This document shows, piece after piece, positions 5,254-63,649 of a DNA stretch of 64,000 nucleotides. Numbering within the stretch: the first letter of the stretch is position 1; the number at the start of each line of letters is the position of its first letter. A model generated the notes under the pieces. That model worked only from the letters and a program-made list of their open reading frames with translations. It made no database searches and was not told the origin of the DNA. The position numbers and the translations under genes were made by a program. Origin of the DNA: Paragordius varius (Eukaryota; Animalia; Nematomorpha); assembly GCA_964247055.1 (NCBI GenBank), contig OZ176050.1:12338001-12402000 (forward strand), in the 5' to 3' direction.

Positions 5254-5520
5254 CAGTAAAAATTGGAGAATTATGCGGACTCACAAAACGAAATATCAAA
5301 TATATTTATCTAAAAAACAACCAAACTCTTAATTTTTTAAATATATAGATCATTGTTTAAAACTTTTAAGTATATATTAGAGATTTATAAAGGTAACACA
5401 AGTAATTATATATTTTACAATAAATGATATTTATATGATAAATTAGGGTTTAAAATGTCTTTTGAAAAAAATATTGTCTTAATAATTTTACGTTTTGTCC
5501 GTATATTTCAATTTTTACTG
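5254..5520. mobile_element. MITE family A (Tc1/mariner-type, ~270 bp)
   Basis: TA|CAGTAAAAATTGGAGAATTATGCGGAC ... TTTTGTCCGTATATTTCAATTTTTACTG|TA; imperfect TIRs and TA on both sides. Confidence 0.85.
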
Positions 5521-5606
5521 TAAAATTTTAGGCATTTTGTTTTAATGGTATTATTAATTTTTGTAAAAAATTATATTTAAAAAAAATAATTACCTTATTC
5601 TATTTA

Positions 5607-5917
5607 TACCATTTTTAACACTTCGATTCAAATTGGGGTACCTATATACAGACTAAATTTAAATTAGGATTTTTAATAAAACTACTGATGGAAACGGTCC
5701 CAATTTAAATTTATGTTTCTATCCTAATAAAAATCATATAAATATGCCAAAATATCTAAATAAAATTTTGTTTTGAAAAAAAAGTTTCATGTCAAACTAC
5801 TTCGACGCCATTTTTATTTTAAAATATTTTGCAAAATATCGTCTTCATTTAATTCGAAGGGTAAAATTAAAGCTAATTTTTTATTTTAATTACATCTAAC
5901 ATAAAGTGACCAGATAG
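5607..5917. repeat. Dispersed repeat family C (probable non-autonomous DNA transposon)
   Basis: Reverse-complement copy at about 9066-9359; a diverged copy at about 50240-50425; related pieces near 8230-8295 and 49930-49985. Confidence 0.75.
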
Positions 5918-7193
5918 GCTGTTTTTCGCAGTACAGTACTGGGTTTTCTAAAAAAAACCGCGCCTGTACTGCCCTGACTTTTGTACTGTATTTTTGAAAT
6001 TTTTTTTATAAATATGTTTTAATTACCATTTATATATACAAGTTTTGTTTGTAGAATTCGATAGAGTACCCTTAGTTAAAATAAATAAATGGTTTTTTAA
6101 CTGTAAAAAACTATGGCCTTTAATTTTAATATTTTATTTTCTGCTCTAATTATACATAAGTCGGGTTTTGGACCGGTCAAATCGCTTATGAATGCAGCCA
6201 TCGCGAAGTGGCGGAACTACCAATATCAGACTCCAGATTTAGGCCAACCTTTCACTCAGGGCTTCCGCAAAAGGGACCTCAAAAATAAACAAAAAATAAA
6301 TTAATATTTCAGTAATTTTATCTTTTGAAATTCATCTTGTTTCATATAAGTTTCGGCTAAATTAAATTTATTTGAGTTTACTTTAATTATAATATATCAA
6401 ACGGAAAATTTTTATATTTCCGCTTTTTAAAATTCATTATATTTGGTTTCGATATAACCTTTTTTTTCTAGGAATAAAACAATTCTTTAATGTTTTGGGA
6501 TTCCTTAATATTTTGCCTCCCTAAACTTTAATTTTTAGCCAGTTTTTTTTATTCTTTTGTGTATAAACAAATTTACAGACCTATTTTAATTTTGGCATAA
6601 ACACACACATAATAATTTTTTTTATTAATTCTTTTCATTTTAATTTTCTTTTCCGTGCTTTTTCTATAAACAAAATATGGACTACGGAAAAAACACAACT
6701 CACAATAGATACCTTGAAAGCAATAGTAATAGTCAAAAATACAGAAGAAAATTGTGAAGCTTTTTTAGATAAAATTTCGCAAAACCATAAATTATTGAGA
6801 CAAATACATAAATCTGAAAAATATATATATAATTTATTATTTTTAGATATTATTACTATTATAAAAAAATAATTATTCATTAATAATTATGTAACGTCAT
6901 ATACCATTGATTGGGTAGACTCAGAACTATTCAAAGTCGGCATTTGGATAATTTTCTATCCATTCACCTATCTTTTTTTCATCAACGCATAGTTTTACCT
7001 GCTGTCAAATAGTAATTTTTTCTAAAAAGCTATGGAACAGAACTTTCATAAGATGGTGTGTGAATGATTTTATCTGCACGGCAACATCTTATAAAAACCA
7101 GATATATTGTTTCCCTCTATTTTTATTATCATATATTGGTAATTATATTGTTTTTGACAATTATCTTTTTTTAAAACAAATATACCATTATAA

Positions 7194-7769
7194 TCTATAT
7201 ATTTATGAAAATGGAAAGTAGTGGCTTGGTGATCTATTTCCGGGAAACCGGTAGATCCAATCAAATCCAAATGTCGAAAAAATATAATCATTAATGAATG
7301 CCCCGACAATAGCTTCGCCCTTTTTTGAATTAGGCCCCCAGTTCGGGCCTACCCCGTGTAAAAAACGGTTTTTTTGAAAACACAAGTCCACAAAAATCGT
7401 GTCTTAGAGAGAATTTTCTGGAAAACGTGTTGGACCATTCAATTTCAAATATGATTTTTGTTTACTTATTTTCGATTGCGCTGAACATAATCGGCTCGCT
7501 TTTTTAATTAAGGCCCTCTTTTTAGCCGCTCCTCCCGTAAAATGCCATTTTTCCAAAAAAATTCAAAATTAATTGAATCTATTTTTCGCCCAAGTAAACA
7601 ATATATTAGTATGAAAGCACCGTTTTCAATTCCTATGAGATCATAGCTAATAAATCGTGTTTCGAAATAATCCACATATGTGGATCATTATATTGTCCCT
7701 TTTTTCAAATAGCTCCCCCCAGTCCGAAGGACTTCCTCGGGCTGCGTAGCAGCACGAGATTTACGCTAG
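7194..7769 (+). mobile_element. Non-autonomous Helitron, copy 1
   Basis: Inserted between A and T; 5' TCTATATAT; 3' hairpin CTCGGGCTGCGTAGCAGCACGAG followed by ATTTACGCTAG|T; first ~390 bp are shared with 10714-11100. Confidence 0.85.
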
Positions 7770-7993
7770 TATTATTATATATCCATATATATAACATATG
7801 ATATAATTATATGTACATACATTTATATTAAATTTTTAATAAATTTATTGGATAATTTAATTGTTTCTAATGAGCTTATAAATAGTAGCGAACAATATCA
7901 TTTAATATAAAACACCGAAAATCCGGTTAAAAAATAGGCAAAGTATGTTTTAATTTTGTACTGCGCCAGGGTTCTAAATATCTGGTCACATTA

Positions 7994-9075
7994 ATCTAAC
8001 ATTGATAGAAATAGAAAAAGCGGTTTATTTTTATAATTTTTAATTGTAACATTTCACATATGTCACGTTGACGAAATTTTTACCTTTCGGTTTCTTAAAA
8101 TAAGTAATATCAAGTATTTTTGAATAAAATTTTTTATATATTACGGTTTATTAATAATGTTATATAAGTGAAAAATTTTGCCATGGTTTCGATTCCGTCC
8201 ATATTTTTTAAAGAATTTAATATTAAACATGGGTATCCAACTAACCCAATTTGAATCGAAGGACTAAAATGAATGTGTTCTATCCAAGTGTTAAATATGC
8301 TAAAAATAAAATGTCTATTTTTAGAATTTCGACCAGCAATAATAATTTTAGAAACCAATTTTTGAGTTCATTAATTATTCATTTATTAGCAATAAAATCT
8401 AAATATATCAATCTATATGAACTTTAATCAATAGTAAAAGTTAAAAATTTGTTAAACAACCATTCAAGGTAAATACCCTCTCTATATTAAACAAAAAATA
8501 TATTTTTTTAACAACAAAGTATATATAAAATTTTATATTATATCTAATTATAATATAATATATTATAAACAAATATAATTTGAAATATATATATATATTA
8601 TCAAAAAAAAATTTCCGAATTTTAAAAATTGGGGCTATATTATATATTTATCAATTTTTTTGAGAAAGTTAATATAAAACAACATAAATAAACAGGAATG
8701 AGGAATTGTAAATAAATGAAAGTATTTTTGTCATTAAAAATATATATATTTTGTCATTGCACACATATACAGTAAGTATACTGTATACATGTTAATGATG
8801 GCTTATTTCACACTATAGTTGGGCAATTTGCAACCAGGAGTGTATGGAAAAATCAACAAAATGTTGAATAAACAAATATTTCCTTTCTTTTTTCCATCAT
8901 ACCCTCCTGTGTGCTGCAAATTCCCCTACTAAAGTTTTATTCAAAAATACTTGATATTACTTATTTTGAGCTAAAACTGAAAGGTAAAAATTTAGTCAAC
9001 GTGACATGTGTCAAATTGTAAAATTAAAAAATAATACAAAATAAACCGCTTTTTCTATTTCTATCAATGTTAGAT
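7994..9075. repeat. Inverted repeat pair (~140-bp arms at 7994-8132 and 8934-9075) around an ~800-bp spacer
   Basis: atctaacattgatagaaatagaaaaagcggtttatt... on the left is the reverse complement of ...aataaaccgctttttctatttctatcaatgttagat on the right. Confidence 0.8.
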
Positions 9076-9458
9076 GTAATTTATATAAAAAATAAGCTTT
9101 AGTTTTACCCTAAATATTAAATTAAGACGATATTTTGCAAAATTTTTGTAAAATAAAAATGGCGTCGAAGTAGTTTGAGATGGAACTTTTTTTTCAAAAC
9201 AAAATTTTATCAAGATATTTTGGCATTTTTATATAATATATATCAGGATAGAAGCATAAATTTAAATTGGGACCGTTTCCTTCAGTAGTTTTTTAAAAAT
9301 TTTAATTTAAATTTAGTCTGGGGTATTTAGATACCCCAATTTGAATCGAAGTGTTAAAACTGTTTTTATTCATATTATATAAACTTATTGTTATAAAAAA
9401 CAGACATCTGTCTTCATTAGCTATTGCGTAATCGTTTTAATCAAATTTAGAACATAAA

Positions 9459-9738
9459 CAGTCAAAATTAAAATTATACGGACAAAACTTAAAAATATAA
9501 AGACAAGACCAATATTTTTTCTAACAGACGACGTGCGATACTTTTTAAATCATGACTATTTTTTTGTTTTAAACAGAAAAATATATAATAGAGATGTTAA
9601 TTGGTAACACCATCAATATATATAATTGTTATTAACTTTAGATAAAGGAAAAATAGTTTAAAAAATAGGTTGTCCTTTGAGAAATTGAGAAAAAAAGTTT
9701 TGTCTTTATATTTTAAGTTTTGTTTCAATTTTTACCCT
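9459..9738. mobile_element. MITE family A, degenerate copy
   Basis: CAGTCAAAATTAAAATTATACGGACAAAAC left end; right end and internal ggttgtc motif are eroded. Confidence 0.6.
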
Positions 9739-10200
9739 TTATAATTTGTTTTGCCATTCCCTTTTCAATCTCAAAACGGTGAGTTATTTAAAAAATCAAG
9801 ATTTCAAAAGTATGGTTTGTCTTTTATAAAAAAAAGATTGTCGCAAAATTTAATTTTTTACTATAAATTTCATACTTTGATATGATGGAATTTTTAAAGC
9901 TCCCAAAAATACAACTATAATATTGAGATAATTAAACATTTTGATAATAATTTAATAAATAAAAAATTTATTCGAAGAAATAAATAAAATGCAAAAAAAT
10001 AACACGTGGCACACTTATTAAAATTACAGTACAATTAATATACTAATAAATAAACAATTGATTGATATTTATTTCTAAAATTGGCAATTGATTATTTTTT
10101 TATAAAAACAATTTAAATGAACTATATTTTTTGACTATCCAGTGTTTTTTGTTTAAAGCTAAAATTAGATAAATGCATAGTTTAAAATTTTCAATAAGAT

Positions 10201-19900: not shown

Positions 19901-22900
19901 ACAAAGTAAGAATTAAACTATAAAAAAATAGATTTGAAACAATTTATAGACATCAATCCAATAACTTTAACCAAGGGTGCTCAACACAAATGACATTTCG
20001 GGCCGCATTCAAAAAATATATGGGCAATAATAAATATTTAATTAATATCCAAAAAGCTATAATTATTACGAGAACAAAATATAAAACTCATTATTTTACC
20101 ATTTGCCAGTTTGGTGCCTAAGTTTGAAATGACTCATTCAGAAATAGGGCAAGCAATATTAATTTGAATTAGATTTAATTTATAAATAGTAATATTTTTG
20201 CGAATTATGGAATTTCTTTGGCAATTTTCCAAATTGTTTATGGGCCTCACAAAATATCTAGGCACCCCTGTCTTAAACTATTTATCTTTATTATATGTTA
20301 CCCACTCTTTATTTCAGAACCAATTCTGTATTGGGGTGATCGTAAAACGTATCGCATTGAAAGCATCAATTTCGATGGTTCTGGTCGACAAGTGCTCATT
20401 GATACTAAACCCCAGGACAATCTATCATTTGATAGCGAGGATGATGGATTAAGTCCACCAGCCACTAATATGGATTCATTTAATGATAATAGCTATGATA
20501 ACTCTGCTCAAAGCAGCCGAATTAGTAAACAACGTCAAACTAAGGGCAGCACTCGAATGATTCAACCCTATTCGATGGCCCTTTATCAAAGTCGCGTTTT
20601 TTGGGCAGATTGGGGCACAGGGGCCATCCTCAAATCTTTATCTTTTTATCACACTGGAAAGTATCAAAGGAATGATGTTATAAGCAAATATTTGCAGGAT
20701 TATGATAAACCTAAATCGTTAGTTATGCTCTCAACTTCACCTACAAGTAAATTTATAAGTTTTGTTTTTTAGGTCTAACATATATGGTGGAAAATTAGTT
20801 TTTTTATAAATGTGTGTAAATTTATTAAATTATAATTTACATTGTAAATTTTTGTGTTACTACCAGCATTTTTTGGATTAAAATTCTGATCTTTTTTCGG
20901 GAAACTCTTCATATAATATTTAATTTGTACATCATTCCAACGTATTTATATTTTTCTTTCCATACCAGGTAAGAAACAATTGCCCTATTATCCCTGTTTC
21001 GACAGTAACAAATGGTGGACTAATACATTAAATTACAATAAAAATAATGATAAGAAGAATAAAGGTAATTTATGTAGCCAACTATGTTTACCAATACCCA
21101 AAGATAGTATAACACAAAGTTATGTGTCATCATCATCTCAAACGGCCTTTAGAGACGAAACTCAAATATCAGATTGGTGGAAAGATTTTCATACTGGTCA
21201 CGTATGCATGTGTCGCGATAATATTGGTTTATAATTTGCGGATATATATATATATATATATCAAATCTTAAAAGTGATAGTGCTATTTGGAAACTAATTT
21301 CTGGTTTTTAGGATGTAAGCAACAAAATGCGATTTTGATAGTTTTACAACCAACCTGGTTTTGACTAAAAAAAACAAAACACTGTTTTTTAGCATCTGGA
21401 ATTTTGGGTAGTTTTCACAAGAGCTTCTAAATTTTTGAAAATATCATTTTAGCATAAAACTTTACTCATTAATTTTGTGTATGCGGTATCATTAAGTTTA
21501 CTTCCGGCTCTTATTTCAATAGCAATTCCAGTTTTAATTTTAAAAAATTAAGAACCAATTCGGTTTCGATTTCTCTTTTTTTGACTTGATCCCTGATTTA
21601 AATCTATAGATTAATGCTTTGTTTAATTAATAATTTTAGATAAAACATCTTCAGATTCTGGATTATGTATACGAACTAGCCAATCCGGGAAACAGTTGAC
21701 ATCCAAATCAAACATTCAACATTCATCATCGCTCATAGTTTATGATAGAGCATTAGGTCAATTAGTTTATGTACGTGAGGGGCAATTCAATCAACCCTTA
21801 GTCAGCGTTGGTTCACAATCTATCGTAATGTCTTTCGATTGGGATCCGGTACAACAAATTTTATATTGGCTAGAATATGTGGGCCATACATTAGGGAAAC
21901 GAAAGTCACCTTCGGCAGCGTTATTGGAAAATTCTCATTCCATCGATTTCTCATCTTTCACCTCATTTTTAGGGGGGACATCGAATGGAATAAATTCAAA
22001 CATACAGTAATAATTTAAAGTAACCAGACAAAACGTAAAATATAAAAGACATTTTTTATGAAAGACAACCATACTATTTTAAAGCTTGATTTTTCATCCT
22101 AAAGTATTTAATTAGAATAATCAATTATAAAATTAAGCGTAATAACAATTTGAATTTACATATTTTGTTCCAAAGTGATGAGTTATATCTATGAAAAATA
22201 GGATTGTAAAATATAGTTTAGTTGTCTTTGAAATGCCATTTAGTTTTTACTTTTTTGTTATATTTCGTTTTTACTGTACCTTTCTATAGCATTAACGGGA
22301 GTAATGTCTTAATGAATGATGAACACGCCATAACAAGTTATATTGCATTGAATTTTGTAACGCTTGAAACCATCAATGAGAATAATGCAAACAATAAAAA
22401 TAGCAATGATGTTGGGACTCTTCCTCAGTCAACCGTGGTTATAAAGGCTTCGTACGTTAAAACTATACGGACTTTTAATCCAATAAGTAAGGAATTACTA
22501 GGCAAATTTTAAAAATTTAATAAAATGTCTTATTTGTTTAGGTGTATTTTTTAAGGATAAGCTTGGTATCAAGAATGTTTTTTTAAAATACAAGCTTCTC
22601 CTTCAAAAATTAAAATATTTTAAAAAATATTCAAAATACGTCATTTTAAACATGAAAAAAAAAACGTTTTGCAATCAAATCTGTGGTGTAATAGGGTATT
22701 AATATTATAAGCCAAAATCCTGAACGTTTAAAATTTAGATTATTGTTTTGTTATCATCAGCATTTTTTCCCACTAAAATAACATATATTTTTTTTCAGTA
22801 ACCAAACCGGAAAGTATGGCATTTAATCCATTATCACGTTTGCTATATTATACGGATTCAGTTCGGCGTACTATTTCAGTCCTAAGCCTTAATGGCCACT

Positions 22901-25900
22901 CCGAAAGAATCTTGATTAAACGACCGACGGCTTACAAACCCAAGCACATTCAGATAGATTACATGGCTGGGTATGTATTAAATATTTATAATTCCTATAT
23001 TTATAGTTTTAATCGATTAAATTAGAAGTAAGATTAATAATTAGTAAATTCTTAAGCATAATAAAAAGTATATAGTAATGTTTCCTGTTATTTAAACATA
23101 GTATTTTAACATGAGATATATCATATATTCATTACGCTGTAAAGTTTGATGTTTTGGGTTGAAGTGTCCGAATTCGATAAACAATTTTTTTCTGCCTGGA
23201 CAGATGGGAGTAACATTAAAACGTTGGCTCAATCAACAACTACCACAATAAGTTCCTTGCATATCTATCCACCTGGTAAAACTTGATTTCGGATAATATT
23301 AAACAATATGTTTAGGCAATATATATATATATTTTTACGTACAAAATTTTTTTTAAAAAGTCTTAGTTTTAACCTATAAATTAATCAATTTTGCGTAATG
23401 TATATATAGATAGATAGTGCAATTTTCAATTAATTCATCTCATTATACACATACAAATACACACACCAATAAACTAAAATTTTCTTTTTATTATATCGAT
23501 TTTTTGTACATTTATCCAGAAAAATTGGTGATTTGGACTGATGCAGATTATTCCATTGTAGAAGCTATAAATTATGATGGGGGTGAACGCAGACCTCTGC
23601 ACATTTATCAACCGTCTCAAACGAAATCTTTGGCTGAACAAAACACAGCTAATGACCCGACATTGGCTAATTCAATCTTTAACATTGCATTTATGGGGGG
23701 AAATCGATTTGCTGTTTTATCTAAGGGTAGTTCACATATTTTCACCTATTCAGATATGTTACATACCATAGTGCCGTCTGGTAAGTTACCACCATCCCCC
23801 GATTATTTTGAACCACACGCCTTAATTATACCAGAAACTTTAAAGTTGCCCACACTTATGTTAACAATCAATGATCAAGACACAAAAACTGTAAAAGATG
23901 AGTTGGAAAGCAAAAATCCCTGTCTTAAACCCGATAAGAATGATAATGATGTAAAAATCACTAAATATGTCCCAACTTGTAGTCATTTTTGTTTAGTTAT
24001 ACCCTTAATATTTCCATCTTCTTCCTCTGATGGGCTTGCTAAAATAACCCGCGTTTGTGAATGTCCGAATGGACTTACTAAAGTAACCCTACCTCCCCAA
24101 AATGGTAAAAATAGCCAAAGTAATATTGGTTTGACTCAAATATTTCGTGAAGTGTGCGTTTTTGATCGTATTTCACCCAACCAAGTTAATAAGCAACAAA
24201 AAACACTCATAGATTATTACAATTTGCATGGACACACAAATGATGATGCAAAAACATCGCTGATTGCGACAGAACAAAATAATAATAATATTAACAATAT
24301 TATGAATAATAATAATGGATTGGTCAAAAATGTGGAGTATCTTTTAAGGGATGAAATGTTGTATGAATCCAGTAAATACTCTTTATATATTTGTATTTAT
24401 AATATTTGATTAAAATTAAGCATTTCAAATATATAATTTAATTTTTGAATAAAAATGTTATTTTTCTTTGCATACAAATTATTTTGATAGCTCTAATTTC
24501 TTTTAAGCCATCTATAGTTCATTACATTTCCTGATAATTGTAAGATATAACAGTAAATATATCCTAACTAACAAACCTGCTTAGAATAGATCATTTTATT
24601 ATTAATTGTTTTTTTAAAATCGTAATTCAATGTTTATCTGGATAAAATTAACTTATTTTATTTTTTTTATTAGAAGTTATTATAAATGGTGTTACATTAT
24701 ATAATTATTCTATTAAGTTAAGAAAGAATCCCAATTGTTAATTGATTATTTAAAAGTTTTTATTATTTTTAACTCTTTGAATGAAGCAACTGTGGGATTT
24801 TTAATAAATATTTACAGTAAAATATGTAATTATACCGACGAATTTTTAAACTAACAGACATAATTTTTTTTATAATAGACAGAGTGTTAAAATCAAAAGA
24901 TTAAAATTTTTAATTTGCGGACAAATTTTTTTTATACGGACATATCCGAAATATAATAGAGTAAGAGGAGCTTTCATCTATAATATTGATAAATAATAAC
25001 CCTCTGAATTCTAGTCGGCTAAATGTTTACTATGCATTTTATAAGAAGCTTTACAACTATAACATAGCTATTGATATTCACCAACTTAAGAATAAACCAT
25101 TTTTGATTTAATATTAACTAATATATTTAATGAATAGGATTTAATAAATCTCGCATTTTATTAAAATTGAGGAAAATATTATTTCTTTTGCATTATTAAC
25201 ACCAATCATAATTGTAAAATTTAAAATAACCTTATTATAATTGTATTCATTTTAAAGAAACTTCTTTACTATTGAAAAATAATAATAATCCAATTTTTAA
25301 TCTTATTAATCTTATTTTTACAATGTTTCCAATCTTATAATAAATTTTAATCGAAAATATCAATAGTCTAATGGGCTTCTACACTGAGTGTATTTTTAGA
25401 TTATATAACATATCAACTCTCTTTATTATATTGTTAGGTGGGACAACTTTCAATTAACGACAAGATGGGACTCTTCTTAATTTTAAACATCTACCGTATA
25501 AGCTCAATAAGCAGACGATTAAATACTAATCGTCTGCTTTTAATACTAATTATAACTGCAATATAATGTAATAGAGACAATAATTTATTAATGTAATATT
25601 TATATTAAAATAACATCAATATAAATCAATTGTAAAAAAATAAATAATCGTGGAAAAAAATAAAAACACTGGTAAATGCCTTAAAAAATATCTATGTCCG
25701 AAAACAATTACTGATTAACCCTATCATCGCAATAAAATAGAACGGGAACAAGTTTTAAAGTTTTTTTACATGATTGTAATGAAGAGATTTCCAACTATTA
25801 AATATATGCATGCGGTTGAAATATAAAATATTTGATGATGATTTATAAATTAATATTTTATTCATCCCAAACATTATAAATAATGTCTATCCACCGTATT

Positions 25901-28900
25901 ATCTAAATAAGAAAATGATATTAGCTATGAAAAAATAGATCCAATTTAAATGACTCACAACAAAAATCATAGGAATTTTCAGGTAATAAATTTAAATTTA
26001 TCTATATGTTCATAATATTTACTTAAATCCTTTTACAAAATATTTTAGAGACTTCTTTTATATTTTTATCCATATTTAAATCTTTCTTATTTAGGGCTCG
26101 TAATTTGTGTTTTTCATGGAAAATACACTCAATAGGGTTTAATTGAGGTGAATATGGTGGCAAAAAAATCAAATTTTCGAATTCCTTATTTCGAGAATAA
26201 CGATGAATAGGGGCATTATCTAAAATTTTATAGGATGATGAAAGTATTATTTTAAACATTCCTGTAAAAAATGATATATATCATCCCCATTGTATGGGTC
26301 AGATTTATATTCATATCATTCCGTTTATTCCAACCATAGCCAAATAGTTTATATTTTTACCTCTTGGCTTACATTTAATTGTAGGAAATTCTCCCTTTTT
26401 ACACCAATAATATAGATAAAGACTGTAATCATTGTTTCCAGTCTCATCCATATAATATATGTCGCTGTGCAAAAACTGTAAAACTTCCCATGCATAAGTA
26501 TACCTTTGCTCTATTATTTCTATTTTATTGCCATTTATAGGCTCAATCTGAGCCTGTTTACGGATAAAAGAATATTTTTTTAAGGCATTTATACAATGTA
26601 GATTTTGAGATTTTTAATGAATAAGGAATATTATCTAAAATATCATCAATTGTTATATTATTATTTTCTTTTAAAATATTTTCGATGGCTTCCTTTAATT
26701 CACAATCATCAAATTTTGGCTTGCGGCCACGGATGTGAAGGCCGACGTTCAATCGCCTGCGATATTTATAAATTGTTGATCTGGACATTTTTAAAATGTT
26801 TATATTGTCTGTCATGGTATTATTCGAAGTGGGCGGATTACTGAAAAGGCTCTTAGCAATTTCATTTTTTTCATTTGTCCAACATCCTCTGCCTTAACCA
26901 AATATTCACAAATAATTTATTATTTTAGATAGTTGAATAAACAATTCACATATTTAACAGATAATTAATTATATTATTTTATTAAATTTTTTAAAAGTTA
27001 TTGCTATAATCGGAAAAATGCAACTAGAATACCTTTATTAAAATAAAGAGGAAGGCATATCAATTTACTTATGTAAATATATTACATGAATTTGTGAAAT
27101 AAAATATCTAGACTATCCCCACTTGAAATAATTGTTTTAAATAACGTCGATCTCAAACCATGATATAAGTTTTAAAAATATATGTAAGGAAACTTAAATC
27201 ATAACATTTATGTCGCTTAAAAACACAAAAAGATACTAGAGCTAGCACAATGGTATTATTGAATATAATATAATTTGAAATGTATAAACGTTTTCTTTGA
27301 CGAATCGTATCTTCTTGGTTGTTGTCTGAACATACAGGCGAAGATGGCGATGACGGTGAGAATGATGGTGAGCGTATAATTGAACGATTTTCTGCACAAT
27401 CATCATAGAATTCTAAAGGTGAAATAAAATTTTACCATAGGTGTGATCCATCAATAATTACTATAGGCTGAATAAAGAGTATTAAATATAGATATTATTT
27501 TAAAAGAAAATAATAATATAACAATTGATGATATTTTAGATAATATTCCTTATTCATAAAAATCTCAAAATCTACATTTTATAAATGCCTTAAAAATATT
27601 CTTTTGTCCGTAAACAGACTCAGATTGAGCCTATAAATTGCAATAAAATAGAAATAATAGAGCATAGGTATACTTATGCATGGGAAGTTTTACAGTTTTT
27701 GCACAGCGACATATATTATATGGATGAGACTGGAATCAATGATTACAGTCTTTATCTATATTGTTGTTGTAAAAAGGGAGAGATTCCTACGATTAAACGT
27801 AAGTCAAGAGGTAAAAATATAAACTATTTGGCTATGATCGGAATAAACTGAATCATAAAATATGAATATAAATCCGACCCATACAATGGGGATGATATAT
27901 ATCATTTTTTACAGGAATGTTTTAAAATAATACCTTCACCATCCTATAAAATTTTAGATAATGCCCCTATTCATCGTTATTCTCGAAATAAGGAATTCGA
28001 AAATTTAATTTTTTTGCCACCATATTCACCTCAACCCTATTGAGTGTATTTTCCATGATTTTAAACACAAATTACGAGCCCTAAATGAGAAAGATTTAAA
28101 TATGGATAAAAATATAAAAGAAGTCTCGAAAATATTTTGTAATAAGGATTTAAGTAAATATTATGAACATATAGATGGAATATTAAATTATGTTTGTTTA
28201 AAAAAAATAAATTTATTACCTGAAAATTCCTATGATTTTTGTTGTGAGTAATTTAAGTTGGATCTATTTTTTCATAGCTTATATCATTTTCTTATTTAGA
28301 TAATACGGTGTATAGACATAATTTATAATGTTTGGGATGATTAAAATATTATTTTATAAATCATCATCAAATATTTTATATTTCAACCGCAGGAATATAT
28401 TTAATAGTTGGAAATCTCTTCATTACAATCATATAAAAAAACTGTAAAACTCGTTTCCGTTCTAAAATTTATTGCGATCGATAGGGTTAATCAGTAATTG
28501 TTTTCGGACATAGATATTTTTTAAGGCAATTACCAGTGTTCTTATTTTTTTTACGATTATTTATTTACAATTGATTTATATTGATGTTATTTTAATATAA
28601 ATATTATATTAATAAATTATTGTCTCTACTACATTATATTGCAGTTATAATTAGTATTAAAAGCAGATGATTAGTATTTAATCGTCTGCTTATTGAGCTT
28701 ATACGGTAGATGTTTAAAATTAAGAAGAGTCCCATCTTGTCGTTAATTGAAAGTTGTCCCACCAAACAATATAGAGTTGATATGTTATATAATCTAAAAA
28801 TATAGTCAGTGTTGAAGCCCATTAGACTATTGATATTTTCGATATAAGATTGGAAACATTGTAAAAATAAGATTAATAAGATGAAAAATTGGATTATTAT

Positions 28901-31900
28901 TACTTTTCAATAGTAAAGAAGTTTCTTTAAAATGAATACAGTTATAATAAGGTTTTTTTAAATTTTATATTTTACAATTAGATGACAGTATGATTGGTGT
29001 TAATAATGCAAAAGAAATAATATTTTGCCTTATTTTTAGTAAAATGCGTTAAATCCTATTCATTTAATATATTAGTTAATATTAAATCAAAAATGGTTTA
29101 TTTTTAAGTCGGTGAATATCAAATGCTATGTTATAGTTTTAAAGCTTCTTATAAAATGCATAGTAAACATTTAGCCGACTAGATTCATAGGGTTATTATT
29201 TATCAATATTATAGATGAAAGCTCCTCTTACCCTATTATATTTCGGATATGTCCGTATAAAAAAAAATTTGTCCGTATAAAAAAAATTTGTCCGTATAAA
29301 AAAAATTTGTTCGCAAATTAAAAATTTTAATCTTTTGATTTTAACACTCTGTCTGTTATAAAAAAATTATGTCTGTTCGTTTAAAAATTCGTCCGAATAA
29401 TTACATATTTTACTGTAAGTTTCCAATATATCAAACTATAATTAGTATATATTTCACGCTTTTCGATTCCAACTAATTTAGCTGACGAAAAATCAATAAG
29501 ATGACATTAGGGACGTGAATTTTGGCGCATTAAACTTATTTTCTCAATAAAATCTGGATAAAACTAAAATATACACTTTACTAATTTTTTAAAAATAAAA
29601 AAAATTAAAAACCCTACTTAACTAATTTTTTTAGTTTCTTCTATTTCATCGCAATATAGTTAAAAACGATGCAATATTCTTCTTCACTGATCCCTTCATC
29701 AATGGTCTTTACTTTGTGAATGCTGCAAATCCTGCCATGTTTACGAATTTGTTTGAAAGTTTACCCTTGAATCCTGGTTCTCCCAGTCAGTTTTTTACTG
29801 TTTCACCCATAACTAATACATTTAACCCCAATGATAAAAATGAAAATGAGAGCAGTAATTATGCAAACACAGTCTTTCAACAAAAATTACATGAGCTATA
29901 TTTTGGAAGGTATGTCGATTTATTTCCTACCGCGACTTCAGAATCATCAAATCCATCAGTTAATGTTAATAATAATAATAATTTCCGAGGATTCGATACG
30001 AACGATATAAGTCCAATCGATGCCGATTTTGATGTGAAAGAGAACAAAATGTACTTCATAGATAGCAAGGATAATTCAATTAAATTTATCACTTTTTTCA
30101 ATAAATCCAACATAATAACCAAGAATGTGGATGATATTAATAATAAGAATAAAACTGATTCTGCGCAAAATATGTTGTGGGATCTTTTTATAAGTCATTA
30201 TGGAGCAAGTAATGGGTTAGATATGGGGACCGTGGCTAAATTTGATATATCAAGTAAAAATATTTTGTTTAACAAAGTTTTGTGAAACAAAATTTAGTTA
30301 ACGGTAAATAATAATCAGGTTGTTTTTACTTCTGTTGAAACTATTGCATTATACTTTAAGAAAATATGAATTTTTATGAACATAAATTATTTTTTATGAA
30401 TTAATTAAGTGCGAATTCAAAAACAAAAAATATATCATATATTTTAAAATATAGCACCCATTTTAGAGGAAGTTAGTATATTTCATAAAATCTAAAAAGT
30501 TTAATTCAAATCCCTTGTATTTGTAAATTTTACAGGTAGTATCGTGAAATTATGCGTCGTTCCACAACTGAACCTTATTTATTTGTACGATTTTACGAAT
30601 CAAGTCATAAAAGTTATGACGAAAGATGGACGGTTAATTAAAGATATCTATCAGGACAAAAAAACTTTTGTTACTTCCATCACAGTCGATATTTTTCAGG
30701 GGTATTATATTATTCATATTTAAAAGGGTTTGATTTGCAATTTTTAACATACGAGATATTTAAAATATTATATATGAATTTAACTTTTGTGGGATAAAAT
30801 TTTTTTTTTAATTTTTCACATAAATAAAACATATATTATTTAATCGCTTGACTTTTTAAAATAATTAAACATATATATAAATTGAGTTTACATTTTTATA
30901 TCCCTGCTGTCTCTAATGAATTTAAAGTCAGACTAAAATATTAACCCTATATAAAATTTTTATTAATTTCACATAATCTAATGATAAAATAATTGACATT
31001 TATGAAATAAGATATCTGTATTGGTCTGAATGGTCCAAGGAGGGAAAAGGACGTATAATGCGATCCGAATTAGATGGAACTAAAGCAAAAATTATAATTG
31101 ATGATCCAATAATCCAATTACCGACAAATTTGGTTCTAGATGCAGATGGTATGATTTGTAAATTTATTCATTATCAAAAAAATATAACTCAGTTATTTTT
31201 TTGGAACTTTCTAGAAATATAAAAAAGATTCTAGGATCGGTATAAGTAACGCAGTTTCAAGCGGTTATAAAAAATTGATTTTTTTGGTGGAAATTTTTAC
31301 AGGAATATTAGCTCTTTTATATGTTGTTTTCTTAAAATAATTATATTTTTTTGATATACACCAAAATTGGCACACAATATATTTATATCTATATTTTTTG
31401 GCTATCAAATTGTATCAAAATAGCTAGCTGTATATTAAAAATATATAACCGAAATCGGAACATTTGACCAAAAAATATGAAATCGAAACCAAAGATGTTT
31501 TCGTAAAAAATTTAGAGCCGGAATCAAAAACAGTTCCATGTCAACGAATCATAATAAACAATCAATTATAAACAAAATTCTTTTTTGGAAAAAATATTGG
31601 GGCAACGCCATATAAGAAAAATAAAAGCATAAAAATACGCTCAACAGAGCATCATTTTTGTCCTATAAACTTTGTTATTCACTGACTAAAATTTAATATA
31701 ATTGTAATTAATGATAAAGGACTAATTTTAAAGCCAACAATACGAAATTACCCGATATTTTTCGAAGTTTTTTGCTAAATTTTGTGTCAATAATAAAAAT
31801 GTTAGATTTAATTTTATTTTTAATGTCTAACAATTATTTCCAGCTTGCCAAACATTTTTAAGTATATTCACATCTAAAGAATATTTTATGAGCGACAGTG

Positions 31901-46179: not shown

Positions 46180-47918
46180 TTAATTAGTCATTTTGCCAAA
46201 ATATGCTAAAACAAAATTAAACACAGTAAAAAGGAAAACATGAGTTGGAGATATTTGTGGTATAAAAGCAGAACTAGAAGAACCAGAACCGTTAACGGCT
46301 GAAGTCACCATTGAATTGCTAGAGTTTGCACTGTTATCATTGGAAGACATTGATCCATCTTTACTGTTTTCCATATCCATATTGGAATTGTTAACCATTG
46401 TTTTGGACATATCAATCCCTCCCATAGTATCATTCGATGTTCCAATATATCTGCACACATGAAAACAGACATTATACAGTAAAAATTAAAATTGTACAAA
46501 CAAAAACGTAAAAACTAAAAGAATATTTTTCACACCATGATGGTTTTAAATACAACCTATAGTTTTGAATTGGAAACTAGGAAATAGAAATGATTGGCAA
46601 AATACTCTACTATACATTTCACAATTTGATTATATATGGTTTATGATGAATATATTATGATTTAGAAATTGTCTTTTTTTTCAAAAACATATGTCTTTTT
46701 ATTTTTACGTTTTGTCTGTATATTTTCAACTTTTACAGTAAGTATTTGTTTAAAAAGAGGATACGAAAGTTACATATGGGTTTACTAATCTAAAAAAGAC
46801 TCTAGTTTTTATTTTAATCCTACCTGACAGAAACATTAGCATTGCAGGCATCTGAGGTGCAAAGACAAATCTCAGAAATGTAATTTGGAACAATCTGTTT
46901 CCTTATGCAAGCAAACGTTATGTTATGCATTGACATATCGCCATCCTGATCCATCATACTGTTATCCGATGTGTTGTGGGCTTTTGTCATATTCATTTCA
47001 CTCATGAGGTGAGCCATATACCCAGGAACTATAACTAAAATGCATTAAAAATATGAATTTTACCCATGAAATTAGCGACACATATAAAATCCTACCTTCC
47101 TTGCTAGATAATTTAAAAGGGCATTAAATTTAGTGGTTAAATAAGAGACAAAACTATGGACCTAAAATTTAAGGTATAAATAAGATATTTAGATAGTTTA
47201 AGACATACCAATTCCGTTCAATTAATATTCGTTTAAATTATATATTTGATGAAAAAATTCTGTTTATAAACCCGTTAAATATAATCAATATCTTCCAAAC
47301 TTTATAAATTTTAAAGGTGAAAAATACCGGGTTGCATGGGTCCAGTACCATTCTGTTGTAGCGTGTACCAATTCATAGCGGTATTATTAACTTGCATCGT
47401 CTGAATATCATTAAGGTTTGCGCAATCACGCATATACCTATTAATAAAAAATAATTTTTAAGCATTTTAAAAGTTTTAATTTTAAACATCATGTTTACAA
47501 CCACTTTTAAATGTTGAATGGCTTGGATAATAAAAATTATTATCATACTATGTATTATATGATATTCCGTTTCCTTGTACCACTTATTCAATTAAAATGT
47601 ATTAAATTTCTGTGAAATGAATTACACCATTTTTATTTAAATAACCCCAATTTTAGTAAAATGAAACACGACATACCGTATCTCCTTGAGTATGCCTTGT
47701 TGAGAGTAGATTCGCTGTATTGTTTTCTTGCACATTTGCGCACCTGAACAAGCCTTCATAAACTTTTGATCCATGGCCGAAGTTCGATTCGGCATATATC
47801 GATCATCACATTCGGGATCATTCACGCTTGAACAAACGTAACAGTTTAAACTGTTGGCTTGTTTTATCATAGTGAGATGCATTGCCAAAAACATGAATAG
47901 TAACAGTGTCATTTTCAT
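46180..47918 (-). CDS. Ly6/uPAR three-finger protein (quiver/sleepless-like), predicted GPI-anchored, 275 aa, 4 exons
   Basis: Exons 47918-47677, 47437-47328, 47028-46824, 46450-46180 (828 nt). Signal peptide MKMTLLLFMFLAMHLTMIKQANS; LNCYVC..C..C..C..RDC..C..CLCTSDACN (10 Cys); Ser-rich omega region and hydrophobic C-terminus. Confidence 0.88.
46477..46738. mobile_element. MITE family A in Ly6 intron 3
   Basis: TA|CAGTAAAAATTAAAATTGTAC...CAAAAACG and TTTTGTCTGTATATTTTCAACTTTTACAG|TA. Confidence 0.8.
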
Positions 47919-49403
47919 ATTAAAACGCAATAAAATTGGACTTGATTTTGCGTTTACCACCGTCCTTTTAGATGATATGGTACCCATATACTGCAGTATA
48001 CTAAATAATTGTGATACTTTAAACTTTACAGGATATAATTAGTAAAATGATGAGACAGCAAAGTAGGTGCGTAAAGTATATATTGAATATTTATGATTTA
48101 GAAATTACGTAAGTATATAGCACACACAAATAATTATATAATTTTAGGCCAAACAAACGCCTTAAAAATCATAACAATAACAAAAACCACTGCCTAAGGT
48201 TTTTCAAAATTTATACTAAAGTTTTTAACAAGGACTTTTTTATAACGATTAACTAAGTTAACAACATGTTTCTCAATAGCTACACAGGTTTTGATTGAGA
48301 GTATTACTGCCAAAAACTAACTTTGTTTTTTTGTTTTTCAATTATTATTAAAAGTTATCCTAATTTTTTTCCACAAGCAAGTTTGAAAGGTTTGACATTG
48401 AAAGGCTTTTAACCACAATTTTTACCTGTGACTATTATTTGAATTTTTTTCAGATTCTGTACACTCCGTTGACCATGTTTATCATTGATTTAGGAAATAT
48501 AGGTAAAAATTATCCTCCCGAAAACTGTAATAAGCATCTTTCGTTGTTAGCCATTTTAAATAAACAAACATTCGAGATTCTTATTATTCTAGGATTAAAT
48601 TTTTACAATACATTTTGTTTGAATATTTACGAAATTTTTATAAAATATTTTTATTTTTTTAGGTGACACCTATTTTTATTATGATAATGTATTAGGCGCG
48701 CGTAACAACACCTCTGTTAATCCGTCCTTCTTAGTTTGGCACAAAATATATAGGACAGGTAAGATATTTCAAGGTCATATCGATTTATTATAAACAAAAT
48801 AAATATTAATTTTGTGTTGAATAGACTGAAAATTTAAAATAAAATATAATGCTCGAAAAATCCTATATTTGATAAATATAATTAGTTTTGGGAATTGTTA
48901 CGATTTTTTTATATATATTAGAGTAAAATATTAAAAGTTCAGGTCATATCTAAATCTGCATAATTTTAGATGAAAGTTTTTATGTTAAACATTATACTAA
49001 GGCATTTAAGAATAAATTGTTTTAGGACAATATAGTTTGAATAACGACCAAATCTCTTGTTACAAAAGGGAAAGATTGTTTTCTAATTTGGATACTGTAA
49101 TAAACTACTATAAAAATAAGCCTATAAAATGTATACAAATAATTGGGTTTTTGAACATCATAAGGCCAGATTTCAATAATTTAGACTTTAATAACTCTTG
49201 CTTTGTGATTCCATAAGAAAGAGGTTAAACCACAATTAAAAAATAGAATCGTTAAAACTTAATTTAGATTTAATTTAGGTATATATATTATATTTATGCA
49301 TGCTGATTTTAGTCATTTTTTTGAATTAGCCCCGTGTCAGAGTCAATCTGTTTATGGTTTCAAATTACTGTGTCCCAAAATTTTAATGTTTCAATTGTTG
49401 GTG

Positions 49404-49443
<40 letters not shown>

Positions 49444-53575: not shown

Positions 53576-53621
<46 letters not shown>

Positions 53622-53770: not shown

Positions 53771-53817
<47 letters not shown>

Positions 53818-56800
53818 TTTATTGAATACGATTACCCTGGTTCTGGTGGGGCTGGCCGACATTTTCACTCTAATACGACTTCAGGGGGATTCCCTAATAT
53901 CTTTGGTAATGGTTATAACTTATAAAATTAAATTTTTGCAGGAAATTGAGGCAAGCCTTGTTGGTTTGCGAAAATTTGGCTTTAAGACTTGAATTATTAA
54001 ATTGGTGTTTACTATAAAATAATCTACTAACAGGTTTGGGGGTGTTCCCATAAATTATTGATTTAACTTTTTATATGATATACGTTATAAAGTATTCAAT
54101 CCAATAGTTATTTAATTTAAAGCAATCTTTACCAATCAATTTGTCTGAAACAAAAAGGGCGTTTAGGAATTATTTTTAAAATGAGAGCTATATTATAAAG
54201 TGTGAGATGAAAAACACATACTTTTGTCTCTTTGCATTATAAATTTTGATTTGAGTTACTTTAGTATAAGATAAAAAAATTTTGTTTAAAATATATATTA
54301 AAATAAATGATATATAAATTATAATAGGCAGGCACGTCCAATTTAGTCCCATATTTTTTATTATAACCTTATACATAATTATAAAACATAATTATTGCTA
54401 CTACAAATTATAAATTTTTTAATTCCATTTTAACTTTTATTCTTGACAAATAATTTTTTTTCGTGTTGAATATTTAGGTAACCTTAGAGACTATGCCTGG
54501 GGTCCCGGGGCCCTTGAAGCCATTATGGAACAGCTGTTCAATCAAATTGAGGGTCAGGGAGTGCCCCCTTCCTCTCCTCAGACGATTGATAAACTGCCAA
54601 CAGCTGTTATCGATGAATATGATATAAGTTTGATTATTGATTAATTTCTTTATTTTTTTGTAAGAAAAGAAATGCGGATAAAATATTAAAGGTAAAATTA
54701 TAAAGACAATCAAAACATAAAAAATGAAAAATTGTTAATTTATTAACCATCTATGTTTTTACAACCCTATTTTTTTATATAAATTATATATTAAAGTTTG
54801 TGAAAAATAGTATTAAGGTGTGTATTTGCTTTAAGTTCAAGTCATCGTAATATCGATTAAATAAAAGTATTACGGTTTTAAAATAATATTTTTGCAAAAA
54901 ATGTTAGTCTTTGACTTAATGTTTTCTGTGTTTATTATAAGTTTTCATTGTGTTTTTCTCAGGAGGGTTTCCGTTCAATAGCTTTTTTTAAATTATTATT
55001 AAACATAATAATTATTACTTTTACATTAATTTATTTAAATGTCTTAGAACAAGAATTACAATGTTCCGTTTGCATGGAATATTTTAAGATAAAGGAAAAA
55101 GTTAAGGCTCTCCCCTGCGAACATTTATTCCATAAGGATTGCATTATACCATGGCTAAATTTGGTAATTTTTTTATTTATATTATACGGTTGTTGTATGT
55201 TAATATTAATTTATTCGTGGCAAACAATACTAAAATTGATTTAAAATATGATATGTAATGTATAATATTTTACAGGTTTAATAATTAATTTTCAAAATCA
55301 ATAACTTTTTGTTTTAATTTTAAGAATGACCGATTGACTGTCGATATTTGCGACATTTTAATTAATTTTTTTTTGTTGTTTTAAAAAAGACATATTTACC
55401 CTTAATTAATGACCCTTAACATCAACATCATATAAAACGTTCATTTTGAGGCTTTCTAATACAAAAACTATTTTACGCTATATATACGCAACTTTTTGTT
55501 TTGGTTTTACACATTGATAATAACTTTTTAAGCATGGAACATGTCCTATTTGCCGTAAACCTGTCGGTCCTGAATCTAAAACGTCTGATGAACAAACTCA
55601 ACCCTTAAACATACCTTCAACACTTTCGAATTCAAATGCTTCAAATGTTTCATCTAACAATGCAATGGGTGGGCGATCTAACAGTGCAACTCCTAGAGTA
55701 CAAATCCCATTGTACCCTAGAATAAATACTAATAGGTTATTTTATCATTTTTTTTATATTTTTTTTTCAATTCGATGAGTTTTAATTAAGTAAATTTGGT
55801 AAAGTCATGTTTCAACAGTGTTAATTATAAGTAACTCGCTTGATTTTGGAAAAAAATGCTTTAAGTTAGTTGAAATATAAATAATAATTATTGTCCTTGA
55901 CACAGCCATAAAGCTTTTGGTTAAGTTTACATTTTTAAAAAAGGAAAAATGAGACTTTTAACTATATACGGTAAAAATTGAAATTATAAGGACAAAACGT
56001 AAAAATATTGAGACAAATATTAAAAGACAACCACCATACTTTTTGAATCTTAATTTTTATAATGAGAACTCATTGTTTCAAACTATAAAGTAGGAAATTA
56101 TGTAAATTCACAAGCAATTTATATAGTATACGATTGTAATTAAATTATTTTTATAGGATAAATTAAGGTTTAAAAAGTACCATTGCCTTTTAGAAAAAAA
56201 TCTGTTTTTATATTTTTGCTTAATGTCCATATAATTTGAATTTTTACTGTAATTACTTTCAGGCATCCCACGCCATATCATAGATCATTTAGCATGCAAA
56301 CTGGTCCGTCCAACACCACTTATAATAATAATATTCAACCATCAAGGTTTACATCAGATGCTCCCTTTACTCGATATCGGTTTTTTCTTTTCTCATTTTT
56401 TTGTAAATAATTAGAAAAAATTATATTTTTTGGAATGAAGAATGGCAGTTTTTTTCATTTAAGATAAAATGTGAAGAACTTACATTTTAAAACAAGTTAT
56501 TATACCAATTCAAAAAAATCAAATATTATTTTGACACAAATATCATTAGATGCTAAATATTTAGATTTTTATATGATGAACTTAATGTATAAAACCTTTG
56601 ATAATGGAAATTTTGAAAATGTATATTAATTTTTTTGCCAAAATGAAAAAAGTTTTTTATATTTTAATTGTTATTAAGCGAAAAAAAATCCATTTTATGC
56701 CTATTAACAAGTATTATTACCCATTAACTTGATAACAAACAAAATTAATTTTCACAAAAAGCAGTAAAAGATAACATTTTGCACAAAAATATCCGCACAC

Positions 56801-60360: not shown

Positions 60361-60783
60361 CAGGCCTGTCAAAATCAAATTTTCATGAAATAGCAAAAAT
60401 TGATAGAATACACCCAAATATGAAAATATTCATCCAAAACGATTTAATTTTCTTTTTTATGGTTTAAACCAGGAGAATCGCCCGCTGGCTACATGCGGCC
60501 CCGAGATCTTATGTGCGGTTCGAGCAAAATTCTGAAATCCATAATTTGCAAAAATATGCTCACAAAATCTTAGTAAAATTAATATTTTTTAAACAATTTA
60601 TTTAAATAAGTCTACCCAATTGGCAAGAACTAGAAAAAATGTTATATTGTGTTTGCATTTAACAGTCTTATATTTGGAATCTAATAAATTATTTATGAAT
60701 GCCCAAGTAAAATTCAAATGCGACCCGCCAGTTTTTATAGGAAAAAATGGGGCCCACGAAGCTATTTAAGTTGGACACACCTG
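60361..60783. mobile_element. hAT-type MITE
   Basis: CAGGCCTGTCAAA ... TTGGACACACCTG ends with typical gcggccc-like subterminal motifs; no TSD seen. Confidence 0.55.
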
Positions 60784-62229
60784 GTGTAAGCTGAAGCAAA
60801 ATTTAGACTGTAATGAGTGCATAAAATTAAATTATTACTAATTTAACCATTTTTACTGTCCTAACTATTATTTTTACTCGATATAACTTTAACATTAATT
60901 AAAATATAAAAAACACTATTTTTTAAAAAAATAAAATTAGAAATAAAATGGCCGCGCAATTGTTTGATATGCTTTCACTGGAATTCATTAAAAATATTTT
61001 ATCTCAGTTAAAATTTATTAGATTGGAATAATGAAATTAAATTAAACTGTCCCTATTAGTTGTTTTTAATATTATCAAATAAAATAGGTATGGGTTATCC
61101 ACGCTCCCCATTTTTTTATTAAAATTTTAAGATTTTAATTTTATCAAAGAAGGTATTTTAAGTCTCATAAAAAGAACGCTAAAAATTTTTTTTATCATAC
61201 ATTATTAAAAAATAGTTTTTTTAGCATACTACGCCAAAAAATATCTGATAGCCAATTTTTTTCAGGTTTGCTTTGGGAAACGGTTATTTTCTTTATATAC
61301 TCTAATCTCCATCTATAAAAGTCAAAATTAAAATATTTTTAATCAAATTTAATCAATAAATATTGGAAAAATTATGTCAGCACAAGAAAACTAATCACGA
61401 TTAAACTTTATGAATGACTTCAAAGAAATTTTGATGGTGAATCTTGTTTAAAAATTATTTTTTCAGAGACTTAGAGAGTTCCATTTATATTGATTTATCT
61501 AGGTGAGTTTTATTTTATAAATTTCTAATGTTTTGAGTCAAACTTAACATGCAAAAAATAATTTTGTGTCATAGTCTATTTATAAAAAAACCTACCGTTT
61601 AAATAACTCTAGGTTTGTGAAAATAATAATCCTCCCATTTTCATATTTTTAAGATTTGAAAACGATAGCGGGAAATTTAATCTCCGTACAAAATAGCCAA
61701 ACAAATGCACTGTTCTTTTATTAAGCAACTTTTTTGTTTTAATTCTAAATTTTAATCCCTTGCCAAGGCTGTATAAAAGTGTCCGCTTATAATTAAAATG
61801 AAAATAATGGGACAACTAGTTTTTGTTAAACAAAGTTACTTAAGTTTTTTATTAAACTATTGTGGACGATGTTTTTTGATTATATATTGCAGAGAAGCCT
61901 TATATTATCTAACATCCTCATATTAGATGTTTTTGATATAATAAAAAATATCAAGATTTTAACATTACAGCTTTCCATTATTTCTTCTTGAAGGGTATGG
62001 CGTACCGAGAGAAGAGGGGGAACATAATTTACGGTCGCTTCATTGAGGCCACGAGTAATTTTGAATAAAAGTTTTGGTAACATACGCCTTTATCATGTGT
62101 ATTCATAAGTTCTAACCGGTTTAATTAATTAGACCTCTGCGAAAAGTAAGCAGAAGATTAATTTGATACAGGACCCATTTTGTTGATCTTACAATACACC
62201 CAAAATTTGATTTACCAAAAACTAGGTCT

Positions 62230-62535
62230 TACTTTTATCATTAAGCGGAAAGACAACATTTTAAGCATTTATTGCAATCAAGAAAGTGATGCTGTTGTAA
62301 GTTATGTATGTTAGTAGAACGTATGGTGAACATGCTTTATCAATTAACACCTGTCAAACATGGTTTTGAATATTAATGAAATCATATGAAAGAGTGTGAT
62401 TGCTGTGGTAGACCGCGCCACTGCAAAACAATTAAATGCAAGAGCTTTTGGATAATGACACAACTGAAACTCAACAACAATTGGCAGAAACACAAAGGTA
62501 TCCGGAATGAATCATAAAACATGGCAAAGTGATTT
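62230..62535 (+). pseudogene. Mariner (Mos1-like) transposase N-terminal fragment
   Basis: Frameshifted TYGEHALSINTCQTWF*, GRPR and QELLDNDTTETQQQLAE resemble the mariner HTH region. Confidence 0.7.
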
Positions 62536-63385
62536 TGAAAATGATTATGCTTTGTCTCAAACAGTAAAATTAGATACACCTTAAAATCAATAGCTAATTT
62601 TTCCTCATCCGATGAACTCTCCTGACCTGATGCCACCTGACTTATTTCATGAATCAAGACCTTTGCAAAGTAGCTACTAATATCGAAGGCATTGTAATAA
62701 TGGTTTTCTACATGAGAAAATCAATTTTTCTGGCACGGCGCTGAGGGATAGGCAAAATGTTTAGAAGCTGATAGACAATGTTTGAATAATATAAATTGAT
62801 TTCCTTTCAAAATTAAATTTTTTTTCACAAAAAATCGCTTATGAATACACCTGGTAGGCAAATAAATATTTTTTAATCTATCGTTTAAAACTGTATCAAA
62901 TGACTTTTCGAATTTGGCTGTTTTTGGCCAATTTATAAATTTTAACTAATTTGGCGCTTAATTTTTAAAAATATAAAATGTTTCAAAAAATCTACAAAAA
63001 ATAAACTTCAATAACTAATTCTAATTTTTTTAAAGCTATAAGATCAAAAGTCTTTTTAATCCCTCTAAGCTAGAAAGAATCATAAATTGCCAAATTTTAG
63101 TTTTGTTTCAAATAAACATCATATCAAATTAATTTAAACTTTGATATAAGCCTACTTTATCATGAGATCAACTTTCCAGCCAAAAAAAACTATAAGACAA
63201 ATAATTTTTTATAAGCCAACCATATTTTTTAAACTTGACTAACCCTTTTTAGATTGCAATACCTTGAGAGAAATTTTGGGATATGTTTTTTATTAAGTAC
63301 CAGACTTTCAAATATGAAACAAAATATTAAGCCATAATGTTTTTAGGTTACATTGTTTGTTGCAAATATTGTATTATTTAAACTT

Positions 63386-63649
63386 ACAGGGGTGAATTTA
63401 CCTGAAATGTATTTATACGGACAAAATCTAAAAATATAAAGACAAATATTTATCTAAAAGACAACCATACTTTTTAAAACTTTAATCTTTAAAATTTAAT
63501 ATTTATGTTATTGATATTATATCTATTTCAGACTTTACCACTTTAAACAATGAGTTATATTGAAATAAATCAAGAATTTGGTTGTCTTTTAGAAAAAAAT
63601 ATTTGTCTTTCTTATTTGCGTTTTGTCCGTATAATTTCAGTTTTTATTG
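63386..63649. mobile_element. MITE family A
   Basis: TTATACGGACAAAATC near the left end, ggttgtctttt internally, TTTTGTCCGTATAATTTCAGTTTTTATTG|TA at the right end. Confidence 0.75.

Follow-up and report, generated by a model that had tools for sequence, protein, structure and literature searches.

A Stowaway-like MITE of Paragordius varius as a candidate rare maker of introns, with ends related to a palindromic Tc1/IS630 element

We analysed a 64,000-nt stretch of the genome of the nematomorph Paragordius varius (the window, G000:C1:12338001-12402000, within an assembly of 110.6 Mb in 44 contigs), which contains seven copies of a miniature inverted-repeat transposable element (MITE), called family A below, together with a 4.6-kb palindromic element of the Tc1/IS630 kind. 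Taking the evidence jointly, we consider it fairly probable that family A is an old Stowaway-like MITE whose ends are related to those of the palindromic element, and that it has acted as a rare maker of introns through a splice donor borne in these ends. The case for intron making is carried by two copies that interrupt open coding frames, and the case for the relationship by the agreement of the two sets of ends beyond the bases that are generic to Tc1-type elements.

Two exonic copies of family A as candidate introns

Two of the seven copies had been taken for exonic in an earlier, sequence-only reading of the window, and an open-frame test bore this out. The copy at 22005-22276 (plus strand), flanked by TA at 22003-4 and 22277-8, is entered by an open upstream exon (21627-22006, plus strand) whose frame of 127 open codons is stopped by the element's own CAG-TAA; deletion of 22005-22278, that is, of the element and one TA, yielded 203 open codons. 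The proposed end of the upstream exon at 22006 follows the CA of the element, and the proposed intron (22007-22289, plus strand) would begin with the GT at element position +3 and close with the first AG (22288-9), 13 nt past the element end. The downstream exon (22290-22485, plus strand) is in frame with the upstream exon after splicing as well as after precise removal of the MITE. The predicted 22006|22290 junction would keep the frame while replacing four codons by one, a net change of -9 nt.

The second exonic copy (34373-34642, plus strand) is older and retains its left TA at 34371-2; its right TA now reads TT (34643-4) and is followed by AG, the insertion site having been TA then AG. The upstream exon (34190-34374, plus strand) again runs with an open frame into the element, and deleting the element with its second TA (now TT) gave 149 open codons. 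Here the proposed intron (34375-34646, plus strand) would extend from the GT at +3 to the AG directly after the former TA, leading into a downstream exon (34647-34836, plus strand) that weakly matches the distal part of a Sushi repeat. Splicing at 34374|34647 would leave the length unchanged and convert a single codon from Arg to Gln.

Both exonic copies differ from the family A consensus by ~17-19%, with ~20 gap events each. The probability that the flanking frames would stay open at that divergence under neutral change, with substitutions alone considered, was 0.002 for the 22005 copy and 0.006 for the 34373 copy. Because open flanking frames are so improbable under neutrality, the host gene appears to have stayed under selection after the insertions, and a gene kept in this way would require that the elements be removed from its mRNA.

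The position of the acceptor also follows a simple rule. Splicing at the donor in the MITE end would add CA to the coding sequence and drop everything up to the acceptor, and the frame would thus be kept only if the AG ends 4, 7, 10, 13 and so on bases past the element. Both exonic copies obey this rule, against a chance expectation of 1 in 9, and both have GT at +3 and an in-frame first downstream AG behind a T-rich stretch. Taken together, the frames and the splice-like boundaries make it very probable that the spliceosome removes both copies as introns from the transcript of a single large gene for an extracellular protein.

We searched the exons singly against Pfam, PDB sequences and a library of 1.8 billion proteins, and recovered a weak Sushi match, weak LRP6 matches and a repetitive FN3-type protein (P0121). 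The exons flanking the 22005 copy are colinear with P0121, the match of the downstream exon being not significant (E 1.6). Neither a paralog nor an empty-site allele of either site was found in the same assembly.

Family A and its copies in the genome

All seven copies reported for the window proved real (5254-5520, 9459-9736, 22005-22276, 34373-34642, 46477-46738, 55969-56249 and 63387-63649), with one start corrected from 63386 to 63387. The same seven and, in the window, three further fragments at 9755-9850, 37559-37721 and 63186-63253 were recovered with a profile that combined 23 full-length copies. With up to 3 mismatches, the 25-mer end of the family had four matches in the window and none in shuffles.

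For a wider census we used a 260-kb sample consisting of the window and 20 loci of 10 kb each, centred on exact end matches. Copies are about 280 bp long (~260-295 bp); their consensus is 294 nt long and non-coding, with ~59 nt at each end forming an inverted repeat. TA precedes 60 of the 68 family A ends in this sample, in agreement with the target-site duplications described earlier. Identity of single copies to the consensus ranges from 66 to 89% (median 81%), and the best pairwise identity in the sample is 87%, so no young copies are present in it. Genome-wide, a 27-mer made of TA and the consensus end gave 4,893 matches with up to 3 mismatches, more than 100 of them exact, whereas the reversed control gave none; this number of end matches points to some thousands of family A copies. 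A DNA search of the genome with family A returned 2,895 candidates at first look. By its length, ends, target sites and divergence, family A is best classified as a Stowaway-like MITE of the Tc1/IS630 kind that is old and has reached a high copy number.

Two observations concern the distribution of the family. The exact end matches were concentrated near contig ends (C1 beyond 12.4 Mb, C3 below 0.8 Mb and C4 below 1.0 Mb), which suggests that family A is enriched in chromosome arms. At one locus (L024:4730-6084, G000:C1:13583595-13584949), about ten family A end fragments of 40-120 bp each are packed into 1.4 kb, an arrangement that looks like local tandem copying of the MITE terminus.

A palindromic Tc1/IS630 element with an intact relative

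The 4.6-kb element of the window spans 24815-29415, with the ends and the TA on both sides that had been claimed for it. It is a decayed and internally deleted palindrome whose arms (~24815-26686 and 27488-29415, ~1.9 kb each) are 89% alike and enclose a centre of ~0.8 kb. Each arm holds a broken transposase remnant, one with helix-turn-helix (HTH) and DDE_3 parts on the left (25924-26815, minus strand) and an N-terminally truncated one on the right (27488-28278, plus strand), the two transposase genes of the palindrome facing outward. Inside the ends lies a GGAC-containing motif, present once on the left (24918-24941, plus strand, including the motif at 24932-24941 named earlier) and three times in tandem on the right (29247-29324, minus strand) with a period of 19-20, so that the threefold inner repeat of the sequence-only reading was recovered with slightly wider limits. 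Because the element lies between two long plus-strand open reading frames (ORFs), it is probably intronic. At 29413-29419 the large element is seen to be itself inserted at TA then AG, a target of the same type as that of the 34373 copy, with non-coding flanks.

A search of the genome with a piece of the transposase revealed the paired arrangement at six further loci (seven in all), three of which (L001, L005 and L006) we inspected. The first of these (L001:792-9177, G000:C11:1381092-1389477) is an 8,386-bp palindrome with TA flanks, in which arms of 4,063 bp are 100% identical around a 260-bp centre and the inner repeat is amplified to 5-6 tandem units. It supplies the intact transposase that had been sought, in the form of two intact 313-aa ORFs with a DDE_3 domain (E 1.9e-22), an N-terminal HTH and the triad D127/D205/E235, that is, DD29E. 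The elements at L005 and L006, also flanked by TA, are 98-99% identical to it and frameshifted. Across the seven loci the arms are 89-100% alike, and the recurrence of the same architecture suggests that it is the palindrome as such that transposes, or that its uniformity is maintained. The family as a whole is low-copy (roughly a dozen elements) and young, with at least one intact member, and the window copy is an old one. A word search found no close relative of the transposase, the nearest proteins being ~33% identical (best 33%) and coming from Hydra, a myxozoan, microsporidia and Mucorales.

The genome also contains a second family of Tc1-like elements, 2.2 kb in length, which has TA flanks, inverted ends of 220 bp and an intact 305-aa DDE_3 ORF. 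Its three copies (L002-L004), one of which lies ~91 kb past the window (L002:3084-5319, G000:C1:12493084-12495319), are 98-99% identical, and for this reason the family has probably been active recently. Its ends also start with CAGTAA, and a donor-like GT is thus common to the Tc1-type ends of this genome.

Relation between the ends of family A and of the palindromic element

Alignment of the MITE consensus end with the canonical end of the palindromic element showed 21 of 25 identical bases. Beyond the generic CAGTAA the two agree at 15 of 19 positions, where base composition predicts 30% (P 1.7e-5). As a control, the second Tc1-like family shares the first six bases with the MITE and then agrees at 6 of 19, as expected by chance, and the resemblance noticed earlier is thus better than that among unrelated Tc1 families. 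Colinear similarity extends for 68 nt and takes in three GAC-containing sites at matching distances, and the inner tandem repeat of the element is an exact match to MITE positions 15-28 (14 nt). End variants intermediate between the MITE and the palindromic element also exist in the genome. We take the shared termini to be specific to the palindromic element and to go beyond generic Tc1 likeness.

Several observations weigh against the overall reading given at the outset. The core of the MITE is without a counterpart in the interior of the element, and 4 of the 25 end positions differ. The ages are far apart, family A copies reaching at most 87% pairwise identity and the transposase-bearing elements being 98-100% alike. 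A third group of DDE_3 matches is present in the genome, the end comparison having covered two Tc1-like families. On the side of the host gene, the matches in PDB and in the 1.8-billion-protein library are weak and of the repeat type, which marks it as poorly conserved.

These points leave some room for the explanation that the end similarity is generic to Tc1-type families and that the true mobiliser of family A was unrelated or is extinct: the differing end positions, the strong difference in age and the unrelated MITE core are what it would predict, and DDE_3 groups other than those compared do exist in the genome. We nevertheless think it unlikely, since past the first six bases the second Tc1-like family agrees with the MITE at 6 of 19 positions against 15 of 19 for the palindromic element, and since the 14-nt match to the inner repeat and the colinear GAC sites are specific and are accompanied by the intermediate end variants. 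Derivation of family A from the palindromic element by deletion was considered and ruled out, as only the ends match. Because family A is so much older than the transposase copies, its expansion would have long preceded those that survive, and the shared ends do not imply a present-day partnership between the two.

Probable mode of removal of the exonic copies from RNA

Removal of the exonic copies might also be ascribed to SOS splicing, the spliceosome-independent excision of DNA transposons from RNA reported by Zhao et al. 2025 (PMC12779559), by which the copies would be cut out through their paired inverted ends with the participation of AKAP17A, CAAP1 and RTCB, and GT...AG would go unused. 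In C. elegans the process excises exonic Tc1, Tc3 and Tc4, and in human cells it acts on a mariner element (PMC12779559). In keeping with it, the intact family A copy at 55969 is predicted to form a long RNA hairpin (-70.4 kcal/mol, z -7.8), and a CAAP1-domain match (38 bits, above the Pfam cut-off) is present at G000:C3:9724963-9725082. In the exonic copies, however, the pairing is weak at 22005 (z -2.3) and the end pairing is lost at 34373 (z -1.8), yet both retain the GT at +3 and the in-frame first AG. Moreover, SOS products are mixed and mostly out of frame (PMC12779559), a poor fit to a frame kept for so long. We consider this mode of removal quite improbable for the two copies and favour the spliceosome, because both have kept the GT at +3 with the in-frame first AG and because end pairing is gone in the older copy and weak in the other. 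Early on, SOS splicing may have softened the effect of the insertions. The idea of a splice donor in a Tc1-type end has a precedent in principle, the same study having suggested that splice sites may have evolved in Tc1 ends (PMC12779559).

Frequency of intron making and remaining alternatives

The empty-site test found none of the ~40 copies at the 20 loci outside the window to be exonic, whereas of the TA sites in this sequence ~19% fall within open stretches at least 80 codons long. This deficit suggests that family A is depleted in exons, like an ordinary MITE, rather than specialised for them. Exonic survivors are perhaps a few percent of copies, a fraction that is only rough because the census sample is small and was picked by exact ends. 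No preference for TAAG targets was detected at the ends sampled (2 of 60, against a background of 3.5%). As for the claim that the family carries a ready-made splice donor, the GT at +3 is present in both exonic copies and in both consensus ends, but an acceptor is not part of the element: the MITE has no AG at its end and carries the donor only.

Other possible exonic copies were tried and rejected, namely 46477 and 55969 in the window and L011:4990, L019:3739, L020:1294, L018:4990, L010, L008 and L013 elsewhere. All failed, for one of three reasons: the empty site was not read-through, one flank alone was coding, or the frames were AT-rich chance frames. Several non-exonic copies end 13-35 nt upstream of an acceptor-like site and an exon start (sites at 56250-56262, at 46450-46476 on the minus strand and at L011:4950-4989), too few for a pattern.

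These counts bear directly on the view that family A is specialised as an introner, is still moved by the palindromic element and has made introns on a genomic scale. Two of seven window copies exonic and in frame, a donor in either orientation and the presence of an intact transposase speak for it. Against this stand the zero of ~40 copies at the other loci, the lack of both a TAAG preference and an acceptor in the element, and the lack of young copies in the sample at a maximum pairwise identity of 87%, and we hold the view to be quite improbable. The proposal of a working animal introner system, in which a MITE with donor ends is moved by an intact palindromic transposase able to mobilise it and has seeded about a hundred introns, also seems to us unlikely. 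Of the introner and mobiliser pair put forward by the sequence-only reading, the specific shared ends and the intact transposase were found as proposed, but the age gap and the lack of exonic copies at the 20 other loci do not fit it. At the sequence level two cases show what is expected of an introner, with a splice site at a fixed position and the frame kept in coding sequence; family A is not mainly an intron family.

Finally, we regard it as hardly credible that the host gene is dead or that the MITEs entered pre-existing introns with no intron gained, as its few recognisable domains might be taken to mean, because frames of 203 and 149 codons across the two sites would have been broken at the level of divergence that the MITEs themselves show, and because a pre-existing intron would not read through, yet precise removal of the elements restores uninterrupted frames.

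Other family A copies and neighbouring genes

The window has a G+C content of ~26%, and its genes encode animal-type domains, including an LDL-receptor class B repeat, a weak Sushi repeat and a Quiver/Ly-6 domain. The family A copy at 5254-5520 is TA-flanked and non-coding and lies ~120 bp from the start of a minus-strand ORF (4152-5135). The copy at 9459-9736 has worn flanks, with AA in place of TA on the left and a decayed right end, and one of the fragments (9755-9850) is found nearby. The 46477-46738 copy is not exonic by the empty-site test and lies ~27 nt upstream of a probable minus-strand exon (46183-46476 being open); the gene in or beside whose intron it is found includes a minus-strand ORF (47637-47987) with a Quiver/Ly-6-type domain (E 6.9e-6). 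The best-kept copy of the window, 55969-56249, whose RNA would form the long hairpin described above, is likewise not exonic, and the copy at 63387-63649 has an altered left end and is non-coding.

Discussion

The most likely course of events, in our view, is that a transposase of the palindromic lineage, or an extinct close relative of it, recognised the GGAC-containing motif and spread family A long ago. As each end reads TA followed by CA|GTAAAA, a copy inserted into an exon would bring in a donor at its third base in either orientation, and the next usable AG in the host sequence would serve as the acceptor. With most copies located outside coding sequence, intron making would be a rare side effect of this spread.

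The putative pairing resembles that of the Stowaway MITEs of rice with the Osmar transposases of the Tc1/mariner type, where the MITEs are short and high-copy, show TA duplications and are like the transposase elements at the ends and not in the interior. Family A and the palindromic element likewise share ends and not interior; here, in difference, the candidate partner is palindromic, with two transposase genes and a DD29E triad. In the inverted repeat/direct repeat (IR/DR) ends of Sleeping Beauty and Tc3, a transposase-site motif at the tip is repeated in the same direction further inside. The palindromic element also repeats its end motif, a putative binding site, inside each end, but its inner site is amplified to as many as 5-6 tandem copies. 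Foldback and Galileo-type elements of Drosophila, which belong to another superfamily, have very long inverted arms and a short centre. Long inverted arms around a short centre are found in the palindromic element too, whereas each of its 4-kb arms carries a whole Tc1/IS630 transposase gene.

Most documented cases in which DNA transposons gave rise to introns come from algae, fungi and protists. In the survey of Gozashti et al. 2022 (10.1101/2022.06.06.494994), introners were found in just two animal groups, and the mobilising element was rarely identified. The exonic copies of family A share with the introners of that survey, and with the algal MITE-type introners cited there, the inverted ends, the target duplications and the single splice site carried by the element, the other site coming from the target or flank and codons sometimes being added or removed (10.1101/2022.06.06.494994). 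They differ in that those families are mainly introns, often with both sites secured by the geometry of insertion, whereas family A is mostly non-genic, brings the donor only and shows no enrichment in exons. A further parallel is the removal of Tc1 from C. elegans pre-mRNAs (Rushforth & Anderson 1996, cited in PMC12779559). There, as in SOS splicing, Tc1-type elements are excised from RNA at or near their inverted ends and the frame is sometimes restored. Those were fresh mutant insertions with mixed junctions, in contrast to the old, decayed copies described here, for which fixed GT...AG boundaries and a kept frame are predicted.

Given that introners were known from just two animal groups in that survey, one more example from an animal, here with a candidate mobiliser, is moderately interesting. 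The window offers two well-defined candidate MITE-made introns in an animal genome, together with a clear rule for frame survival and a named candidate transposase of which an intact copy exists. These features make the path from insertion to intron testable, and the two copies provide a natural case for asking whether hairpin-triggered excision from RNA tides a gene over until a spliceosomal intron has become established.

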